Positions 1 through 24,703 of a DNA stretch of 64,000 bases are shown piece after piece. The stretch spans positions 249,316 through 313,315 of IMG/VR virus record IMGVR_UViG_3300047319_001872. One strand, written 5' to 3'. The first letter of the stretch is position 1, and each line of letters starts with the position of its first letter. The position numbers and the translations under genes are program-made. A model generated the notes under the pieces. It was not told the DNA's origin and made no database searches. It saw nothing but the letters and a program-made list of their open reading frames with translations.

Positions 1-738
1 TCGAACACCCTCCTGTCCATGTCAGGGTGGCCGGACCTGGAAGCCCAGACATTCACCGCGCATGAAGGCATATACAAGGAGTCCTTCAGCATCGTGGATA
101 GCGTGGTCGACAGGTATGAGACATACGATATAACCGCCAATTTCCGGAACCTGCCGGGCGATCCTGTCACGTTGATGATGATGTCGTGGCTCTTTTACGA
201 GTCCTACGTCTACCTCGGCGAGCTCGTGCCGTATCCGGACATGCTGATCAATAACGAGATCGATTATCAGACCCGGATTTACCGCCTGGTGATGGACCCG
301 GATAAGCGGCGTGTGCAAGGCATTGCAGCGTGCGGTGCAGGCTTTCCGGTGACCTGTCCGATTGGGGCGAAGTTTAACTTCGAGTCGGATCAGCCGTTGA
401 ATAAGAACATGGATCAAATCAGCGTGACCTTCCGCTGTGCGGGTGCCATGTACAACGACGACATCCTGATTGATGAATTCAACCGGACGCAGGCGCTGCA
501 CAATAACAACATGCACCCGAGTAACTTCTCGGGCTTTGGACAGAATACGACCAATCCGAATTATCGGCTGCTTCAGCTTAACGAGGTGGAGCTCTTTAAC
601 CACACCGGTTATCCACGCATCGACCCGGTCACCTACGAGTTGCAATGGTGGGTCGATAAGACCACTTACGGGCGCATGCTGCCGACACTGAATTACCAGC
701 AGGGGTTGATTCAACGCCTCGCTTCCCCGACGAGCTAA
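1..738 (+). CDS. Conserved phiKZ-like virion structural protein, probably 5'-truncated by the window edge
   Basis: Frame is open from base 1 (SNTLLSM...); ORF track gives 19..738; lies directly upstream of the 969-aa structural gene; product inferred from context. Confidence 0.55.
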   Translation, partial: SNTLLSMSGWPDLEAQTFTAHEGIYKESFSIVDSVVDRYETYDITANFRNLPGDPVTLMMMSWLFYESYVYLGELVPYPDMLINNEIDYQTRIYRLVMDPDKRRVQGIAACGAGFPVTCPIGAKFNFESDQPLNKNMDQISVTFRCAGAMYNDDILIDEFNRTQALHNNNMHPSNFSGFGQNTTNPNYRLLQLNEVELFNHTGYPRIDPVTYELQWWVDKTTYGRMLPTLNYQQGLIQRLASPTS

Positions 739-749
739 AGGAATAGAAC

Positions 750-3659
750 ATGGCTGCAACCATCAGCGCATTGCTCTCGAACATGCAGAACTACCAGAAT
801 AACCCTGCGTTGATTCAGCAGGACATTCTGGACCACCTGGACATAGTCACCAGCGGTGAAGTCAATATCGTCGACCCGTCCAACCCCTTTGTGTTCGGAC
901 TGGAGTCAGCGACCGTGTGCACCGCGGGCATGATGAGCAAGAGCGATACCAATACGCGACGTCAGTATCCGCAGTTGGCACAAACCCCGGAAGACCTGTA
1001 TTACCACATGTCGGACTGGGACTACATCAACCGGTTTGCCGCCCCTTCGGTGGCGCTCTTTTCCTTCATCTTCGATAAGGATGAGTTGATCTCCAAGCTG
1101 GTGACTGACCCCGCGACCGGGGTGTCCCAGATCGTGATCCCACGCAACACCGTGGTGATGATTTCGGGCGTGCAGTTTAGTCTGCAGTACCCGATCGTGA
1201 TTCGCCAGATGCAACACGGTGGTCTGAATGTGACGTATGACGGCAGCGAGCCGTCGCCGTTGCAGGAACTGACCTCCAATGTGATCGACTGGGAAATCCG
1301 CACGGTCAATGGCACGAACTGGCTCTTCTTTGATGTGCCACTGTACCAGTTCAATATCCTGTCCACGCAGCAAGGGGTGGTGCTCGCTACCAAGTGGCAG
1401 ACCACCATCAGCTTTAGCGACCAGTTCTACTATGCTCGCGTGTGGGCTGAAAACAGTGACGGCACCTGGACTGAACTGCTCACGACGCATTCGATCGAAG
1501 TCTACGATCCGACCACGCCGACCGCAGTCCTGCAAGTGGTGAACCAGACGCTCACGGTCACGATTCCGCAGATCTATATCACTAGCGGGCAGGTGAAGAC
1601 GTCGGTGCGGGTGGACCTGTATCAGACCAAGGGCGACATCAACATGGATCTGTCGTCGTATCCGCAGAGCGCCTATTCGGCGAACTGGCTGGCGATCGAT
1701 GCGAACGACAATCTGCCGACCAACTTCTCGGCACCGCTGAAGGGCTTTAACCAGCTGGCGATCTGGTCCAATGATCGGACCGTGGATGGCAATAACGGGC
1801 TGACGTTCAGTCAGCTGCGTCAGCGCGTGATGACCAACTCGACCGGTGCGCAGAACCTGCCGATCACCAACGTGCAGGTGCAAGCGGCATTGCAGAACAT
1901 CGGCTACGATGTGGTCGAGAATGTGGATAACATCACCAACCGGGTGTTCCTGGCCACACGTGCGATGCCGGACCCGACCAACCCGGCCTTGATTACGTCT
2001 GCGGCGGCTTCGATCGAGACACTCTCGACGACACTTACCGCGCTGACGACACTCGAGTCGGTGATCAATAACGGTAACTCACTCACGATCACGCCGGACA
2101 CCATCTACCAGAGCACCAGTGGTGTGGTGAGCGCGGTGCCCACCGCAGCTGTGAAAGCGTTGCTGGCTCTGCCACCGGATCAACGGGCACTGGCTGTCAC
2201 CAAAGGGCAGTACTTCTACTCACCCTGGCATTACGTGCTGGATAACACGGGACCGGAGTTTGAAGTGCGCCCGTACTATTTGGATGCGCCGCTCGCGGAC
2301 ACCACGTTCTTTGTCTCGGAGAATGATACGACGCTCTTGCAAGTGAGCACCAAGAGCTACCAGATCACCAAGAACGCTGACGGCTCAGGCTATACGCTCA
2401 CGATCAGTACGTCGTCCAACGATGGCTGGAAAGCCCTGGCCGATGACAAGGTGTATGTGCAGCTCGCTTACATCCCGGAAGGCGAGAGCGGGTATGCTTA
2501 CCTGATGGGCACGCTGGTCGGGACCAACACCAGCACCAACGAGCGGACCTTCTCGTTTGATCTGTCGTCGAACTTCAATGTCGACTCCAACGACATGTTG
2601 CAGTTGAAGAAGTTCCTGATGTACACGACCGATCCGATGCTCACTGCCTGTAGTCTCACGCAAACGTTCGAGATTCTGTACGCCGCGGACGCTGTGATGG
2701 ATACGCAGTGGAAGCCGGGTGAGATCGACGCGATGCTCGGCATGTTCCTCTTGCCTGCAACCGCGGTGGGTGTGACGCACGAGCAAATCCGCGTGAAGTT
2801 CGGCTCTTCGTTGACGACACTCTGGGCATCGACGCGTACGGTGAATGATGCGGTCACCTATCGGACTTGGCCGATGGACGTGCTCTCGTACTACACGAAC
2901 GATGTGTATGGCGACCCGGCGGTGACGATTGTCAATGGTCAGCTGGTGCAAAACATCGTGCACCGTGCAGGCGACCCGGTGATTAATCCGGCAACGGGCC
3001 AACAGGTCTTGCTGCATGCGACAGGCGATGTGATGAGGGACGTGGATGGCAAGCCGATTCCGATCGGCACGCAAGACACTCTGCGTCAGATTGACCTGAT
3101 GTTGCTTGAAGGCGTGTACTGGTTCGCTACCGATGCGATTGCCACGGGCTACCGCACTGAGCTGGTGGATACGGTACTCGCCTGGTTGACGGAAGACCTG
3201 GTGAGCTTCCAGGCGAGGTTGCTGGAGCAGACCCGTATCTACTTCTATCCGAAGGCGACCACGGGGAACATCAACGTGATGATCAACGGGGGCTTGAAAA
3301 CCACCGTCGCAGCTGGTCAGTCGTTTAAGATCACGCTCTATGTTCCGGCTTCCGTCTACAGCAACAGCGATCTGCAGAATCAACTGGTCAAGACCACGAT
3401 CAGCACGATCTCGACGCAGCTGGAGAATGCAACCGTCGCCGATTCGGCGCTGAAGGTAGCGCTGATGAAGATCTACGGCGAGGATGTGATTGACTGTGAA
3501 GTCGCGGGTCTGGGTGGCTCGGGCTCGATCTCGGTGATGACGGTGATTGATGCATCGAACAAGCTCAGCATCCGTAAGCGTCTCTTTGCCCAGTCGGATA
3601 ACAGTCTGATTGTTCAGGAAGACGTGAGCGTCAACTTCATCCAGCATCAGCTGAGCTAA
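750..3659 (+). CDS. Large virion structural protein, possibly baseplate wedge-like (969 aa)
   Basis: AAGGA RBS; beta-rich T/S/V/N composition; 'GLTFSQLRQRV...PITNVQ' resembles the baseplate J/gp6-type 'ESxxxLRxR...vT..D' segment (inference). Confidence 0.6.
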   Translation: MAATISALLSNMQNYQNNPALIQQDILDHLDIVTSGEVNIVDPSNPFVFGLESATVCTAGMMSKSDTNTRRQYPQLAQTPEDLYYHMSDWDYINRFAAPSVALFSFIFDKDELISKLVTDPATGVSQIVIPRNTVVMISGVQFSLQYPIVIRQMQHGGLNVTYDGSEPSPLQELTSNVIDWEIRTVNGTNWLFFDVPLYQFNILSTQQGVVLATKWQTTISFSDQFYYARVWAENSDGTWTELLTTHSIEVYDPTTPTAVLQVVNQTLTVTIPQIYITSGQVKTSVRVDLYQTKGDINMDLSSYPQSAYSANWLAIDANDNLPTNFSAPLKGFNQLAIWSNDRTVDGNNGLTFSQLRQRVMTNSTGAQNLPITNVQVQAALQNIGYDVVENVDNITNRVFLATRAMPDPTNPALITSAAASIETLSTTLTALTTLESVINNGNSLTITPDTIYQSTSGVVSAVPTAAVKALLALPPDQRALAVTKGQYFYSPWHYVLDNTGPEFEVRPYYLDAPLADTTFFVSENDTTLLQVSTKSYQITKNADGSGYTLTISTSSNDGWKALADDKVYVQLAYIPEGESGYAYLMGTLVGTNTSTNERTFSFDLSSNFNVDSNDMLQLKKFLMYTTDPMLTACSLTQTFEILYAADAVMDTQWKPGEIDAMLGMFLLPATAVGVTHEQIRVKFGSSLTTLWASTRTVNDAVTYRTWPMDVLSYYTNDVYGDPAVTIVNGQLVQNIVHRAGDPVINPATGQQVLLHATGDVMRDVDGKPIPIGTQDTLRQIDLMLLEGVYWFATDAIATGYRTELVDTVLAWLTEDLVSFQARLLEQTRIYFYPKATTGNINVMINGGLKTTVAAGQSFKITLYVPASVYSNSDLQNQLVKTTISTISTQLENATVADSALKVALMKIYGEDVIDCEVAGLGGSGSISVMTVIDASNKLSIRKRLFAQSDNSLIVQEDVSVNFIQHQLS

Positions 3660-20901: not shown

Positions 20902-21103
20902 GCGGTGCTCCAGAAACCCTGTAAGAAATTACTTGCGGTCGCCATGCTGTAGCTAACATGTTCGCAATCAGGCGATTACGTCATCGGAAGCTACAGTCCT
21001 CTGTGAAATCGAACCACACAACGGGGTCGTTCTTTTCGAGGATAGTCAGATGATTGAGCTATCCGATAGCACTTAACATTTAAAACGGTATTTGGGGTTT
21101 AGC

Positions 21104-21667
21104 ATGACGAAGAAGAGTCAGGGTCGGTTGATGCGCGACGCGATCAAGAAGGACGCGAAGGAAGAGCTCAACCAGAATCGCAACTGGGACGAGCTGCACG
21201 AGCGCTATGCAGAATGCCGCAACCTACTGTTGATGCATCTGGCTGTCGGGGAAATCCTCCAGCGCCCGGACATCCAGGGGGAGATCTACAAGCAAGAAGC
21301 CCAGACGGTGATCAGCAACATTCAGCTCCTCACCAAGGACCTGAACGAGCGCGCTCAAGAGCTCACGATGATCTACGGCACGCACTCGGATAAGACCGGG
21401 GGCTGCGACGAGAACGACATCATGCTCTCGTTTGAGATCATGGAGAAGTACACCGCGTGGCTCTCGCTGATGCAAGCGAACGTGCAGCCGACGCTCGCGC
21501 ACATCATGGAAATCACGAGCGAAGTCGAAAAGCGCCTCATCGCCAAAGCAGCCGTGCTCGATCCGAACGTCGTCACCGACGTGGAAGTGACCGAGTCGAC
21601 CAAGCACAACGACACGCTCGCCGCCGGGATTGCGGCGGCGGACAAGACCAACCCGAAGGCGGAGTAA
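21104..21667 (+). CDS. Hypothetical helical protein
   Basis: ORF track (ATG 21104); first gene of a divergent operon. Confidence 0.65.
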   Translation: MTKKSQGRLMRDAIKKDAKEELNQNRNWDELHERYAECRNLLLMHLAVGEILQRPDIQGEIYKQEAQTVISNIQLLTKDLNERAQELTMIYGTHSDKTGGCDENDIMLSFEIMEKYTAWLSLMQANVQPTLAHIMEITSEVEKRLIAKAAVLDPNVVTDVEVTESTKHNDTLAAGIAAADKTNPKAE

Positions 21668-21670
21668 ACG

Positions 21671-23299
21671 ATGGAAGGTCAAGAGAACAACAACATTCAC
21701 ACGCCGTCGGTGACCACCGCGGCTGACGTGCCGCCGGAGCTGCGTACACCGACGACGGCAGTCGAACCGGCCGTGATCCAGCCGCCCGCACCGGACGTCT
21801 CGGAAGGCGTGCACGAAGTGCTCGGGGGTTTGCCTGAAGATACGCTGAGTGATGCCGCGGCACCGGCGCAGGAAGACACCGAACTGAAGGTCGAAGAAAC
21901 GCCCAAGCGTTTGCCGCAAGCCGATACGACCACCGTCAAGCAAGAACAGGCGGTGTTCATTCCGCTGGGTGTGGCGTTCGACGTGAACGGTATCACGCTG
22001 GCTGTACCGGGTGCGCGGGAAGACGAGCTGCAAGAAGCCCTTGCCAAGATGCCCAACACCGATCTGGGTGCAACGGCTGAAGGTCGCGAGTGGATTGCCG
22101 TGGCGCAGGCAGGCTATCGTAATGCCACGCCGCGTAAGATGCTCACCGACCTCGACGTGCGCGAAGGCTCGCTGTGGGAGCAAGCAGTCAAGTCCGAGCG
22201 CGGTGGCATTCAGGCCTCGCGTCCCAAGCAAGCCGATACCGCTGGTGTCAGTCTGCGTGGCGAAGCCGGGGTGCTGGCCGTGCGTCAGGAAGTGGGTCTG
22301 GGTGGCATCATCCGGATTCCGCTGTGGCACTCGGGCTTTCACATTACGCTCAAGACGCCGAGCGATGCAGCCATCCTGGAACTGGAACGCCGCATTACTG
22401 ACGAGAAGGTGCTGCTCGGTCGCATGACCAACGGCATGCTCTTCTCCAACACGTCGGTGTTCATTGCCGAGTACCTGACCGAATTCGCCATTCGCCATCT
22501 GTACGACACGTCGCTGCGTAACAAGGAGAACATCTTCTCCAAGATCGTCTCGCACGACATCCAGCATCTGGCATGGGGACTGGCCACGGCGATCTGGCCG
22601 ACGGGCTTCCAGTACGTGCGGTCAGTGCTGGGCGAAACCGACGCGCAGAACAAGGTGGTGAAGGACAAGATCGCGGTCGGCAAGCTGCAGTTCACCGATA
22701 CGTCGCAACTGTCGAAGTGGCAGATCAACCACATGACCTCGGTCACGACGGGCTCGATGACGGACGACTCGATCAAGAAGTACCGCGAGGAGTTCCTGAA
22801 TCAGACGCCGCGTAAGGTGCAAGTCACCGACAAGGTCGCGATCACGCTGAAGGTCCCGACGCTCGCCGAGCATATCGCCTCGGGCCAGAAGTGGGTCAAC
22901 GGAATCGTCGTGATGACGGACCAGGTCTTCGGCATGGAACAGGACGTCGATGAGCGTAACCGCTTTATCTACGAACAGGGCCAAGCCACCTACATGCGTC
23001 AATACGGGCACTGGATCGAATCGATCGAGCTCTCGAACGGCGCGATTGTGGAAGACCCGGAAACCATCGACCAGACGATCGACGCGCTCTCCGCGGATGA
23101 CACGATTCGCAACAAGTTCGTGGACGCGGTGGTGAAGTACATCGAAGATACGACGGTCTCGATGATCGCCGTGCCGACGGTGGCGGCAAGCGAAGAACAG
23201 AAGTACCCGCGCTGGCCGCGGTTGCTGCCGATTGATGCGATGGCAACTTTTTTTACCCTACTCGACCAGAAGGTCTCGCAGATCCGGGCACGCAGCTAG
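21671..23299 (+). CDS. Conserved core protein (phiKZ gp77-like); candidate tail/baseplate assembly chaperone
   Basis: GGAG RBS; two repeats of 'ITLK(T/V)P(S/T)'; ends shortly after an in-frame T_TTT_TTT slippery site. Confidence 0.7.
   Translation: MEGQENNNIHTPSVTTAADVPPELRTPTTAVEPAVIQPPAPDVSEGVHEVLGGLPEDTLSDAAAPAQEDTELKVEETPKRLPQADTTTVKQEQAVFIPLGVAFDVNGITLAVPGAREDELQEALAKMPNTDLGATAEGREWIAVAQAGYRNATPRKMLTDLDVREGSLWEQAVKSERGGIQASRPKQADTAGVSLRGEAGVLAVRQEVGLGGIIRIPLWHSGFHITLKTPSDAAILELERRITDEKVLLGRMTNGMLFSNTSVFIAEYLTEFAIRHLYDTSLRNKENIFSKIVSHDIQHLAWGLATAIWPTGFQYVRSVLGETDAQNKVVKDKIAVGKLQFTDTSQLSKWQINHMTSVTTGSMTDDSIKKYREEFLNQTPRKVQVTDKVAITLKVPTLAEHIASGQKWVNGIVVMTDQVFGMEQDVDERNRFIYEQGQATYMRQYGHWIESIELSNGAIVEDPETIDQTIDALSADDTIRNKFVDAVVKYIEDTTVSMIAVPTVAASEEQKYPRWPRLLPIDAMATFFTLLDQKVSQIRARS
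23248..23254 (+). other. Predicted -1 programmed ribosomal frameshift heptamer T_TTT_TTT
   Basis: Reads ACT TTT TTT ACC in the 21671 frame; -1 frame is closed by TGA at 23233 and then open through 23763. Confidence 0.65.
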
Positions 23300-23763
23300 T
23301 TGCAAAACACGTCGGTCACCCATTCTTTGGAGAGCATGTCGATGTGGTCGCGAAGCTCAGCGAACTCATTGCCAACGCCCCCAAGATGTGCGTGACCGAC
23401 ACGCGACAGTTGTTGTTGCACCGCTACGAGACGGACTTTGGGATTTACAATCACGACATCTCTGATTTCGAGAAGAATCCCTTAGCCCTTATCCGGATGC
23501 ATTCTCGTGAGGATTCATACACGGGTAGTCATCTGGCCGAGCGCATCAGGCAGTATCACGAACGGCAAGTGTGGGAAATCACCCACGAACCGTTGAGCGC
23601 CTTTCTGAACTATCCGCGCCACATGGTGCTGGACATTTTGGAACTGGCCGACAAGGTGTTGCGGGATAAGACCGCAACGTTGGTGAAAGAAGGCAAGGTC
23701 CTGGAGGACCGTGTCGCCGCGCTGAAGGCCACGAACGGCGACATGACTCCACCACCGCACTAA
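23254..23763 (+). CDS. Frameshift-accessible C-terminal extension, or a separate ORF from GTG 23344
   Basis: -1 frame open 30 codons upstream of GTG 23344; 'FLNYPRHMVLDIL' recalls gpT/gp51-type chaperone tails (inference). Confidence 0.65.
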   Translation, partial: YPTRPEGLADPGTQLVAKHVGHPFFGEHVDVVAKLSELIANAPKMCVTDTRQLLLHRYETDFGIYNHDISDFEKNPLALIRMHSREDSYTGSHLAERIRQYHERQVWEITHEPLSAFLNYPRHMVLDILELADKVLRDKTATLVKEGKVLEDRVAALKATNGDMTPPPH

Positions 23764-23775
23764 CCGGGGCCGTCA

Positions 23776-24228
23776 ATGATCATTTACGATGAACCGCGTA
23801 ACATCTTTGAAGTAACGGAGCAAACGCTCGTTAATCCCGTGAACACGCAAGGTGTCATGGGTGCTGGCTTAGCGTTGGCTTTTCGCAGTACCTTTCCCGG
23901 TCTGTTTGAAGAGTATCGCGACGCTTGCCAGCAGGAGGTGTTTACGCGGCGAGGTTTCTTCGTGTACGACGTTGACGCTTCGCGCAAGGTGTTGTGTTTG
24001 CCCACTAAGCGAGAATGGCGCCATCCTTCGAGACTGGAATGGATCGAAGAAGGCCTTTGGTATTTGTCGAGAGAGTATGAGCACTACGGGATTACCTCAC
24101 TGGCGATTCCTGAGGTAGGCTGCGGGCGAGGTCAGTTAGGATGGGCAGATGTGCGCCCTCTGATCTATCAGTACCTGGACCCTATCGCGTTACCAGTGGG
24201 GATTTGTTTAAGCCCCTTTGCAGTCTAA
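23776..24228 (+). CDS. Macrodomain (ADP-ribose binding/hydrolase, DarG/Poa1p-like) protein
   Basis: LVNPVNTQGVMGAGLALAF; LPTKREWR.PSRLEWIEEGL; SLAIPEVGCGRGQLGW. Confidence 0.9.
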   Translation: MIIYDEPRNIFEVTEQTLVNPVNTQGVMGAGLALAFRSTFPGLFEEYRDACQQEVFTRRGFFVYDVDASRKVLCLPTKREWRHPSRLEWIEEGLWYLSREYEHYGITSLAIPEVGCGRGQLGWADVRPLIYQYLDPIALPVGICLSPFAV

Positions 24229-24244
24229 CTGACTGGGAACGACG

Positions 24245-24703
24245 ATGATCATCTACGAAACAGAGTGCGAACAGTTACGTGCAGAAGCGCAGACGCTTCT
24301 CACGCCCATCAACATCGATGCCGTGGGGGGCGGAGGTTTGCCTGCGGCGTTTCGGTATGGATTCCCCGGACTCTTTAAAGCCTATTGCTGGGCCATGAAA
24401 AAGGGGATCTTCGAAAACGATAGCCTGTTTGTCTACGACGTGTCGCCCGAGCGGAAAATCGCCTGCATGCCGATGAAGCAGCACCAGCGGTACAGCACCG
24501 AAGAAAAGCTCGAGTACCTCGAAGAAAGTCTGATGGTAGTGGCCACCAGCTACCAGAAGTACGGTATCATCTCCATGGCACTCAATGAAATCGGTTACGG
24601 TGACACTGCGCTACCATGGGAAAAGGTCAGGCCGGTCATCCAGCGTTGTTTTGGATCGATCGATCTGCCGGTGGGGATTTGTCGGGGAGTAGTACCTGTG
24701 TAA
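24245..24703 (+). CDS. Divergent macrodomain paralog
   Basis: Colinear with the preceding gene (MIIY..., FPGLF..Y, VYDV...RK, YGI.S.A..E.G.G...L.W..VRP.I, LPVGIC) but motif changed to TPINIDAVGGGGL. Confidence 0.8.
   Translation: MIIYETECEQLRAEAQTLLTPINIDAVGGGGLPAAFRYGFPGLFKAYCWAMKKGIFENDSLFVYDVSPERKIACMPMKQHQRYSTEEKLEYLEESLMVVATSYQKYGIISMALNEIGYGDTALPWEKVRPVIQRCFGSIDLPVGICRGVVPV

Follow-up and report, generated by a model that had tools for sequence, protein, structure and literature searches.

A probable, conserved -1 frameshift in a core gene of nucleus-forming jumbo phages

The DNA analyzed here, referred to as the window, is a stretch of 64,000 nucleotides from the IMG/VR virus record IMGVR_UViG_3300047319_001872. 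It contains a core gene of phiKZ-like giant phages, here called gene A, followed by a smaller open reading frame, ORF B, which lies in the -1 frame relative to A (Table 1). Gene A belongs to phrog_4585 (E 3.9e-98) and was found by tblastn in 194 phage records. Its orthology was taken from notes in HQ630627 and from the table of Chimalliviridae core genes. The gene order with the phiKZ gp078-like gene upstream is the same in phiKZ, 201phi2-1, PhiPA3, Goslar, RAY, and FLC9. Near the 3' end of A, a run of seven T's is read as ACT TTT TTT ACC, with 14 sense codons remaining before the stop. The -1 frame has a TGA at 23233-23235 and then stays open to the TAA at 23761-23763, and the first ATG, GTG, or TTG in that frame is the GTG at 23344. 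Slippage at the run would give 528 + 169 = 697 amino acids with the junction ...MATFF|YPTRPEGLADPGTQLVAK. The initial annotation had described this arrangement from the sequence alone, and its observation was confirmed in every detail.

Table 1. Coordinates of features at the gene A-ORF B locus (positions in the window)
Position	Strand	Feature	Remarks
21092..21667	+	Upstream gene of the same block, phiKZ gp078-like, 191 aa	Stop lies 3 nt before the ATG of A
21671..23299	+	Gene A, 542 aa (ATG 21671 to TAG 23297-23299), 0-frame product	Ortholog of phiKZ gp077 / 201phi2-1 gp136 / PhiPA3 gp074 / Goslar gp081 / RAY gp267; core gene cg18
23236..23299	+	Overlap zone where both frames are open	The shift must occur here
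23248..23254	+	Slippery heptamer T_TTT_TTT	Phe527-Phe528 of A
23254..23343	+	-1-frame coding stretch with no possible start codon	Encodes a predicted flexible linker (YPTRPEGLADPGTQLVAK) and the first part of domain B
23264..23275	+	4-bp hairpin GACC-AGAA-GGTC	Present, but not supported as a stimulator
23308..23331	+	Conserved motif HVGHPFFG (consensus H-V-x4-F-G)	Start of domain B, upstream of the annotated GTG
23344..23763	+	ORF B as called by gene finders, GTG start, 139 aa, phrog_12109	Best read as the C-terminal domain of the 697-aa A-B trans-frame protein (21671-23254 joined to 23254-23763)

The T run is more than expected by chance. The window has 56% GC, TTT accounts for 32% of Phe codons and ACT for 9% of Thr codons, TTT-TTT is 1 of 27 Phe-Phe pairs, and only two T runs of 7 or more occur in the 64 kb. 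By contrast, the hairpin that had been proposed to follow the slip site as a stimulator is not supported. It appears in the minimum-energy fold of 23255-23345, but this 91-nt fold is no more stable than shuffled sequences (z = +0.93). The hairpin is broken in the closest isolate, FLC9, and folding of the 70 nt after the run in 56 orthologous loci gave no common structure (mean z = -0.65). No upstream SD-like element is conserved either, so that the efficiency of a shift cannot be guessed from the sequence. Such stimulators are frequent but not obligatory at -1 frameshift sites.

Comparison of orthologous loci strongly supports recoding. In all 92 loci inspected (80 IMG/VR loci, the window, and 11 isolate genomes), with hosts from Pseudomonas to Bacillus, the -1 frame is open from upstream of a homologous T run to 386-512 nt beyond the stop of A, whereas the +1 frame closes within a few codons. 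In some orthologs the -1 frame opens exactly at the T run (minimum distance 0 nt). The 80 tabulated loci show 29 different lengths, all shifted by multiples of three, and the indels seen in relatives are likewise multiples of three. Among these 80 loci the first Phe codon is TTT in 80, against 34% TTT elsewhere in A, and the base before it is T in 72. The sites are T_TTT_TTT in 50, T_TTT_TTC in 13, G_TTT_TTT in 8, T_TTT_TTG in 3, T_TTT_TTA in 1, and T_TTT only in 5, so that 67 of 80 have a canonical X_XXY_YYZ heptamer. However, the 8 loci with G_TTT_TTT and the 5 with only T_TTT plus a non-slippery A-site codon are poorer sites for tandem slippage. In the clade of the window, neighboring synonymous sites vary while the run is kept. 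Both frames are constrained in the overlap, and the 0-frame tail T-L-L-x-Q-K is also conserved. This last observation is against the possibility that the true genome, or a subpopulation made by replication slippage, has one more T and encodes a single 697-aa ORF. Homopolymers are indeed error-prone in sequencing and replication, but the same two-frame arrangement occurs in 92 independent assemblies and isolate genomes with runs of 5 to 8 T's. Moreover, no natural in-frame A-B fusion was found among 50 A homologs (lengths 332-554) or the 150 best B homologs (97-186 aa). DNA-level heterogeneity or an assembly artifact is therefore considered very improbable, although the lack of a natural fusion also withholds one kind of support from the recoding model.

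It is also very unlikely that A and B are two ordinary genes, with B initiated at GTG 23344, at a non-canonical codon, or by termination-reinitiation, and with the T run present only because protein A needs Phe-Phe. In this view the shared -1 frame would be a relic of compact ATGA/TGATG overlaps, and -1 is the frame produced by the commonest gene overlaps. All databases annotate two genes, and in the window a GGAG lies 12 nt before GTG 23344. However, this GGAG is the Gly-Glu codons of the conserved motif and is absent from FLC9, and the GTGs of the window and of FLC9 are not at aligned positions. An SD-like motif precedes 5 of 80 first start codons (6%), equal to the 5% background, and 1 of 12 annotated B starts, against 41 of 62 (66%) neighboring genes. 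The H-V-x4-F-G motif was found in 77 of 80 loci and starts before the first possible start codon in 66 of these 77, and in several loci no start occurs for more than 70 codons. The motif is identical, apart from V/L, in 8 of 8 close relatives, and the PHROG 12109 profile extends over it and covers the start-less part. The B profile is matched by 1647 representative clusters, whose called starts are scattered over profile positions 1-60. Phe-Phe alone does not explain TTT in 80 of 80 loci, or the T at the preceding wobble base, and spacer lengths vary by up to about 126 nt yet never break the frame. In 11 of 77 loci a start codon does precede the motif, for example in RP31, where an ATG overlaps the stop of A, so that free B may exist in some lineages.

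The same A-B fusion would be made if the phage or host RNA polymerase stuttered on the dA template run and inserted an extra U in a fraction of mRNAs. Several features fit such transcriptional slippage. The conserved element is a homopolymeric run of 7-8 T's in 66 of 80 loci, no stimulatory RNA structure is conserved, and all three phases of the run relative to the reading frame occur, as expected if run length rather than register mattered. These phages also use unusual multisubunit RNA polymerases of unknown slippage behavior. However, the runs are never 9 or longer, the length at which bacterial RNA polymerases slip efficiently. Nine loci have 6 T's and five have only 5, yet keep the whole arrangement, and those five short runs are all in the register that preserves an in-frame T_TTT. 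No RNA run was listed for the phage of the window. At a phiKZ-type locus, RNA-seq contigs from infections pass the T7 run without an indel in 4 of 4 runs, but this is weak evidence because assembled contigs hide rare variants, and a few per cent of U-insertion transcripts would have gone unseen. Transcriptional slippage remains a minor and unlikely rival.

The explanation considered likely is that gene A and ORF B form one recoding unit. Most ribosomes would read through A and terminate at TAG 23297, giving the 542-aa protein, whose last 14 residues complete a C-terminal helix. At U_UUU_UUU a fraction of ribosomes would slip back one nucleotide, with the two tRNA-Phe re-pairing on UUU UUU, and continue in the -1 frame through a roughly 20-residue disordered linker into domain B, that is, the H-V-x4-F-G motif and a helical domain ending in a 40-residue helix. 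The result would be a 697-aa protein consisting of residues 1-528 of A, without its terminal helix, plus B. The predicted junction peptide is LLPIDAMATFFYPTR in this phage and FPHLIPIDMLSTFFYFGGLEVK in phiKZ, and the start-less stretch includes HVGHPFFGEHVDVVAK. In this view B is not made alone, since in most lineages it has neither a start codon in the right place nor a ribosome-binding site. The predicted structure of B is helical with a long C-terminal helix (pLDDT 86), and pLDDT is 54-58 over its first 20 residues. The anatomy of the locus, its conservation, and the coding character of the start-less stretch are demonstrated by the sequence comparisons. That the trans-frame protein is made, that the slip is ribosomal rather than transcriptional, and that both isoforms are needed in a fixed ratio are inferred. 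No trans-frame peptide, Ribo-seq data, or reporter assay was found, and paper searches found no report linking frameshifting with phiKZ-like or Chimalliviridae phages. The signal is unannotated in all twelve records read.

The initial annotation further inferred that the two genes are the missing tail assembly chaperone pair of phiKZ-like phages, of the lambda G/GT type. Its interpretation is thus only partly supported, as recoding is strongly supported on comparative grounds but the chaperone identity is not supported as stated. In lambda gpG/gpGT, and in P2 E/E+E' and Mu gp41/42, a slippery heptamer lies a few codons before the stop of the upstream gene, the -1 frame runs into a next ORF without a start of its own, and a short and a C-terminally extended product are made. 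This arrangement is reportedly conserved across very divergent phages although the sequences are not (Xu, Hendrix & Duda 2004), and no obligatory RNA structure is needed. The locus described here resembles it in these respects, by comparative inference only. However, A has 542 aa rather than about 100-150, and the heptamer is U_UUU_UUU rather than of the G_GGA_AAG type. A is not placed between tube and tape-measure genes but between a block with a virion RNAP beta-like subunit, a gp079-like head protein, and gp078 on one side and macro-domain genes on the other. Neighboring genes include a helicase in PhiPA3, 201phi2-1, and Eowyn, and a DNA polymerase in RP31. A has no Pfam hit, and hence no Pfam chaperone domain, and Foldseek matches to tail assembly chaperones are insignificant (E >= 0.67). 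The Churi ortholog was detected 15 min after infection and listed as non-structural (PMC11849849). As for presence in virions, 201phi2-1 gp135-137 carry no note of identification by mass spectrometry, unlike gp138/139, and the Goslar ortholog (gp81) is not mentioned in the text of the Goslar virion paper. The pair works like G/GT at the level of gene expression, as far as sequence comparison shows, but is not supported as a member of that family.

Two other frameshifts can be compared. In E. coli dnaX, tandem slippage on a homopolymeric heptamer, A_AAA_AAG, sets a fixed ratio of the isoforms tau and gamma, which share the N-terminal body. There, the shift truncates the protein and is boosted by an upstream SD and a downstream hairpin, whereas here it would extend the protein and no stimulators are seen. 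T7 gene 10A/10B is a phage morphogenetic gene with a U-rich slippery site (G_GUU_UUC) near the 3' end and a minor C-terminally extended isoform. The T7 extension is short and dispensable, is not known outside T7-like phages, and is not a separate conserved domain.

A weaker lead to function came from structure prediction. Comparison of orthologous pairs and a structural comparison with T4 gp26/gp51 had both been suggested in the initial annotation; the former gave the support described above, and the latter a weak resemblance. The predicted fold of A (about residues 200-540) matches BFVD models named 'baseplate hub assembly protein, T4-like' or 'baseplate hub subunit' (Foldseek E 2.5e-5 to 6e-4, probability 1.0, TM 0.43-0.50 on the target). 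In the ESM Atlas, 44 of the 100 nearest clusters carry PF12322 (T4_baseplate), and a structural match has TM 0.72. Both sides of these comparisons are predictions. T4 gp26 and gp51 belong to PF12322 (E 9e-64 and 4e-52), and both families carry CPxC plus a Cys pair in most members. T4 gene 26 also makes two nested products, 26 and 26', but by internal initiation and not by frameshift. However, none of 34 members of the A family matched the Pfam model even at E <= 5, and three hhalign runs were not significant, with E 0.15 over 73 columns that include a Cys pair and a Q-x2-H motif, and E 0.002 for the CPxC motif alone. A is twice as long and is not next to hub genes. Membership is not established. 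A profile of B against gp51 gave nothing. Sequence and profile searches found no solved structure for A, B, or phiKZ gp077, phiKZ gp077 is not in any PDB entry, and Foldseek of A against the PDB gave nothing below E = 2. For B, Foldseek against BFVD found only uncharacterized jumbo-phage orthologs, and BTB-like eukaryotic clusters from the ESM Atlas were rejected because their scores are not trustworthy. The ESM Atlas gave no usable lead for the gp078-like gene, and the PCH45 Tn-seq paper does not mention cg18.

It is possible, though with low confidence, that the pair is a non-virion assembly factor in which the minority A-B isoform brings an adaptor domain, analogous in logic to, but not homologous with, lambda G/GT. 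A morphogenetic role is unproven. A further, unlikely but not excluded possibility is that A and A-B are the hub/tape-measure assembly factor of giant contractile tails and true, very distant homologs of T4 gp26/gp51. T4-type hub assembly catalysts would then be the myovirus counterpart of the G/GT chaperones, two isoforms in a fixed ratio would be an ancestral principle, realized by a frameshift here and by internal initiation in T4 gene 26, and the B domain would be a hidden extra core gene of all phiKZ-like phages. Alternatively, since the Churi ortholog is detected early, the pair may act in a nucleus-era process unrelated to tails, and its isoform ratio might respond to phage factors that bind the ribosome.

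phiKZ gp077 is one of the roughly 70 core genes of nucleus-forming jumbo phages and has no known function. If the recoding is real, every one of these genomes is mis-annotated at this spot. In phiKZ only the last 80 codons of B are annotated, in RAY B is stretched back into A, and B is missing from the published core-gene list although it is as conserved as A. The real products would be a 60-kDa and a roughly 78-kDa protein sharing one body, and this would change how knock-outs, tags, localization screens, and structure predictions of this gene should be designed. One synonymous change would abolish the long form and one added T would force it. For recoding biology, it would be a U_UUU_UUU site kept across hosts from Bacillus to Pseudomonas without an obvious stimulator.

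The initial annotation, which described a run of seven T residues near the end of gene A and an open -1 frame leading into ORF B, held in every detail of the sequence. Gene A encodes 542 aa, and its 0 frame reads GCA ACT TTT TTT ACC around the run, so that the run forms an in-frame T_TTT_TTT located 14 sense codons before the stop. The -1 frame is closed by a TGA upstream of the run and then stays open to the end of B. A -1 slip would join residues 1-528 of A to 169 further residues, giving a protein of 697 aa. This configuration is unusual for this genome. The window has 56% GC, TTT accounts for 32% of Phe codons and ACT for 9% of Thr codons, only 1 of 27 Phe-Phe pairs is TTT-TTT, and only two T runs of 7 or more occur in 64 kb. 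Other long homopolymer runs were also found in the window, and several in-frame A_AAA_AAN heptamers occur in its putative genes.

Positions of the features of the A-B region, of other runs in the window, and of related loci
Sequence	Position	Strand	Feature
window	21665-21673		junction of the gp078-like gene and gene A
window	21665-21667		TAA of the gp078-like gene, 3 nt before the ATG of A
window	21671		ATG of gene A
window	23233-23235		TGA in the -1 frame
window	23248-23254		T7 run
window	23297-23299		TAG of gene A
window	23308-23331		HVGHPFFG motif in the -1 frame
window	23344		GTG, first ATG/GTG/TTG in the -1 frame
window	23761-23763		TAA closing the -1 frame
window	23776-24228	+	first Macro-domain gene (Pfam Macro, E 2e-11)
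window	24245-24703	+	second Macro-domain gene (Pfam Macro, E 1.2e-3)
window	9688		A9 run
window	24949		A10 run, between convergent genes
window	45294		A8 run
window	56714		A10 run
window	62546		T7 run
protein A of the window	about 315-325 and about 505-512 (residues)		region of the four cysteines carried by most gp077 orthologs
L086 (phiKZ locus)	3321-3563		B as annotated (PHIKZ076.4)
L089 (RAY locus)	2736-3284		B as annotated
L004 (Eowyn locus)	2654-2980		B as annotated
L005 (pEa_SNUABM_54 locus)	2699-2926		B as annotated
L094 (Serratia phage PCH45 locus)	566-2380		locus with the T run farther from the stop of A
L093 (contig of phiKZ-type phage PA7)	3517		one extra A in RNA-seq contigs of two runs

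Over the gene A region, the window matches an uncultivated viral contig of 313 kb with 100% protein identity, and its nearest isolate is Burkholderia phage FLC9 at 74% nucleotide identity. A belongs to phrog_4585 and B to phrog_12109, and neither has a Pfam domain. By tblastn, A is found in 194 phage records. Annotation notes identify A as the ortholog of phiKZ gp077, 201phi2-1 gp136, PhiPA3 gp074 and EL gp47, and Goslar gp081, phiKZ gp077 and RAY gp267 are listed together as Chimalliviridae core gene cg18, a "hypothetical protein" (supplement of Prichard et al., 2023). B is absent from that core-gene list, and its annotation is inconsistent among the isolates. In phiKZ only its last 80 codons are annotated, in RAY it is stretched 135 nt back into gp267, and in Eowyn and pEa_SNUABM_54 it is cut to 75-108 codons. 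The ATG of A is preceded by a GGAG 9 nt upstream, and the block gp078-A(-B) looks like one translationally compact operon, conserved from phiKZ to FLC9. Directly downstream of B are two tandem Macro-domain genes. The same pair follows B in five close relatives, and a macro gene follows B in Goslar.

To test the recoding by comparison, we collected 80 loci from IMG/VR, eleven isolate genomes (FLC9, RP31, PhiPA3, Eowyn, pEa_SNUABM_54, phiKZ, 201phi2-1, Goslar, RAY, Bacillus phage AgentSmith and Seoulvirus SPFM16) plus PCH45, and five close metagenomic relatives. In every locus, the -1 frame is open from upstream of a T run to 386-512 nt beyond the stop of A, and the +1 frame closes within a few codons. 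The distance from the stop of A to the stop of B takes 29 different values in the 80 loci that were tabulated, all congruent modulo 3. Many indels have therefore occurred without ever breaking the frame. These 80 non-identical loci comprise 68 of the IMG/VR loci, the window and the eleven isolates other than PCH45. In PCH45, the T run (-1 peptide GFFYPS...) lies about 140 nt before the stop of A rather than about 50, and the 0-frame tail after the slip site is therefore much longer in this lineage. The T run sits at the nearly invariant Phe-Phe of A. Among the 80 tabulated loci, the heptamer is T_TTT_TTT in 50, T_TTT_TTC in 13, G_TTT_TTT in 8, T_TTT_TTG in 3 and T_TTT_TTA in 1, and the remaining 5 have T_TTT followed by a non-slippery codon. 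The first Phe codon is TTT in 80 of 80 loci, although TTT is only 34% of the other Phe codons of A. Within the clade of the window, the wobble positions on both sides vary (GCA/GCG, CTA/CTG, AAG/AAA, GTC/GTT/GTA) while the run is kept.

It was also found that, in most lineages, B has no start of its own. Translation of the -1 frame from the run gives a variable, Pro/Glu/Asp/Gly-rich stretch, which is followed by a conserved motif H-V-x4-F-G (HVGHPFFG in the window). This motif is recognizable in 77 of 80 loci and begins before the first possible start codon in 66 of them, and in several loci no start codon occurs for more than 70 codons. The GTG of the window aligns with GTC in FLC9, and the GTG of FLC9 aligns with AAG in the window. 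When the start-less part is included, the PHROG 12109 profile aligns to it, with profile positions 10-130 instead of 26-130 and 95.5 instead of 89 bits. An SD-like motif precedes the first -1-frame start codon in 5 of 80 loci, against a background of 5% within gene A, and precedes 1 of 12 annotated B starts, against 41 of 62 neighboring annotated genes. The single positive among the annotated B starts is the GGAG of the window itself, which is simply the Gly-Glu codons of the motif and is absent from FLC9. In an exhaustive profile search, B has 1647 representative clusters, and gene callers start them anywhere between profile positions 1 and 60, which is the signature of a domain without a conserved initiation site. 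The 0-frame tail of A after the run (T-L-L-x-Q-K...) is also conserved. Both frames are therefore coding in the overlap, and both products are expected.

The anatomy fits tandem -1 slippage of two tRNA-Phe on U_UUU_UUU. No stimulatory element is evident, since folding of 70 nt downstream of the run in 56 loci gave a mean z of -0.65 and no shared stem. The 4-bp hairpin pointed out in the initial annotation is in the minimum-energy fold of the window, but this fold is no better than shuffles (z = +0.93), and the hairpin is disrupted in FLC9. The serious rival is transcriptional slippage on the T run, against which three points count. First, the runs are 5-8 long and never 9 or more. Second, fourteen loci have only 5-6 T, and the five shortest all keep an in-register T_TTT. 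Third, RNA-seq contigs of four phiKZ-type infection runs cross the T7 run without an indel, although this last point is weak because assembled contigs drop rare variants. In two of the RNA-seq runs, the contigs carry one extra A at about the position of the stop codon of B, which is probably a strain difference between PA7 and the infecting phiKZ stock. The frame relation, the conservation of the slippery site and the coding character of the start-less stretch are established by sequence comparison, whereas the production of the two proteins, and slippage of the ribosome rather than of the polymerase, are inferred from it. We regard ribosomal slippage as probable and transcriptional slippage as unlikely.

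An AlphaFold model of A built with 34 homologs is confident (pLDDT 77.7) and predicts a disordered region at residues 1-74, a mixed alpha/beta body and a C-terminal helix at residues 523-541. The slip at Phe527/528 would therefore replace most of that last helix. The model of B has a pLDDT of 86. Its first ~20 residues are of low confidence (mean pLDDT 54-58), and helices follow, the last being 124-163. Neither protein, nor phiKZ gp077 itself, matches any solved structure by sequence or profile, and a fold search of the PDB with A gave no match. Among predicted viral structures, A matches its orthologs and then a series of models named "baseplate hub assembly protein, T4-like" or "baseplate hub subunit" (E 2.5e-5 to 6e-4, TM about 0.45-0.5 on the target). 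The ESM Atlas independently places PF12322-bearing clusters among the neighbors of A (44 of 100 hits, with a structural TM of 0.72), and both gp26 and gp51 of T4 are PF12322. However, sequence methods do not confirm this link, since there is no Pfam hit in 34 members, and hhalign gives E 0.15, or E 0.002 for a CPxC motif only. Most gp077 orthologs carry four cysteines, C-x6-C and a CPxC about 40 residues before the Phe-Phe site, which probably form a zinc site. The clade of the window (the window, RP31 and sequences P0015-P0038 in the alignment of the orthologs) has lost all four. T4 gp51 relatives also have CPxC plus CC. B matches only uncharacterized jumbo-phage proteins.

The interpretation offered in the initial annotation was only partly supported, because the frameshift is strongly supported by the comparative data but the proposed identity of the pair with G/GT fails on size, gene position and fold. 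Evidence on presence in the virion is indirect. In 201phi2-1, gp135-137 lack the mass-spectrometry note that gp138/139 carry. The Goslar ortholog (gp81) is not mentioned in the text of the Goslar virion paper, which models 28 virion proteins, and the Churi ortholog is listed among non-structural proteins seen 15 min after infection (PMC11849849). A non-virion protein with a gp26/gp51-like predicted fold could be an assembly factor, and in that case the A/A-B pair would be a functional analog of G/GT in logic only. However, the early detection and the neighborhood (virion RNA polymerase subunit, head protein, macro domains and helicase) leave room for other roles. The morphogenetic reading is held with low confidence.

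In the literature that could be searched, no paper connecting frameshifting with these phages was found, and none of the twelve annotated records inspected carries a joined CDS. Although -1 frameshifting that makes a C-terminally extended isoform is well known as an event, its occurrence in a universal core gene of phiKZ-like phages appears undescribed so far. The finding is of good interest because the arrangement is universal and easily tested, and because, if the recoding is real, it changes the annotation of a whole phage family.
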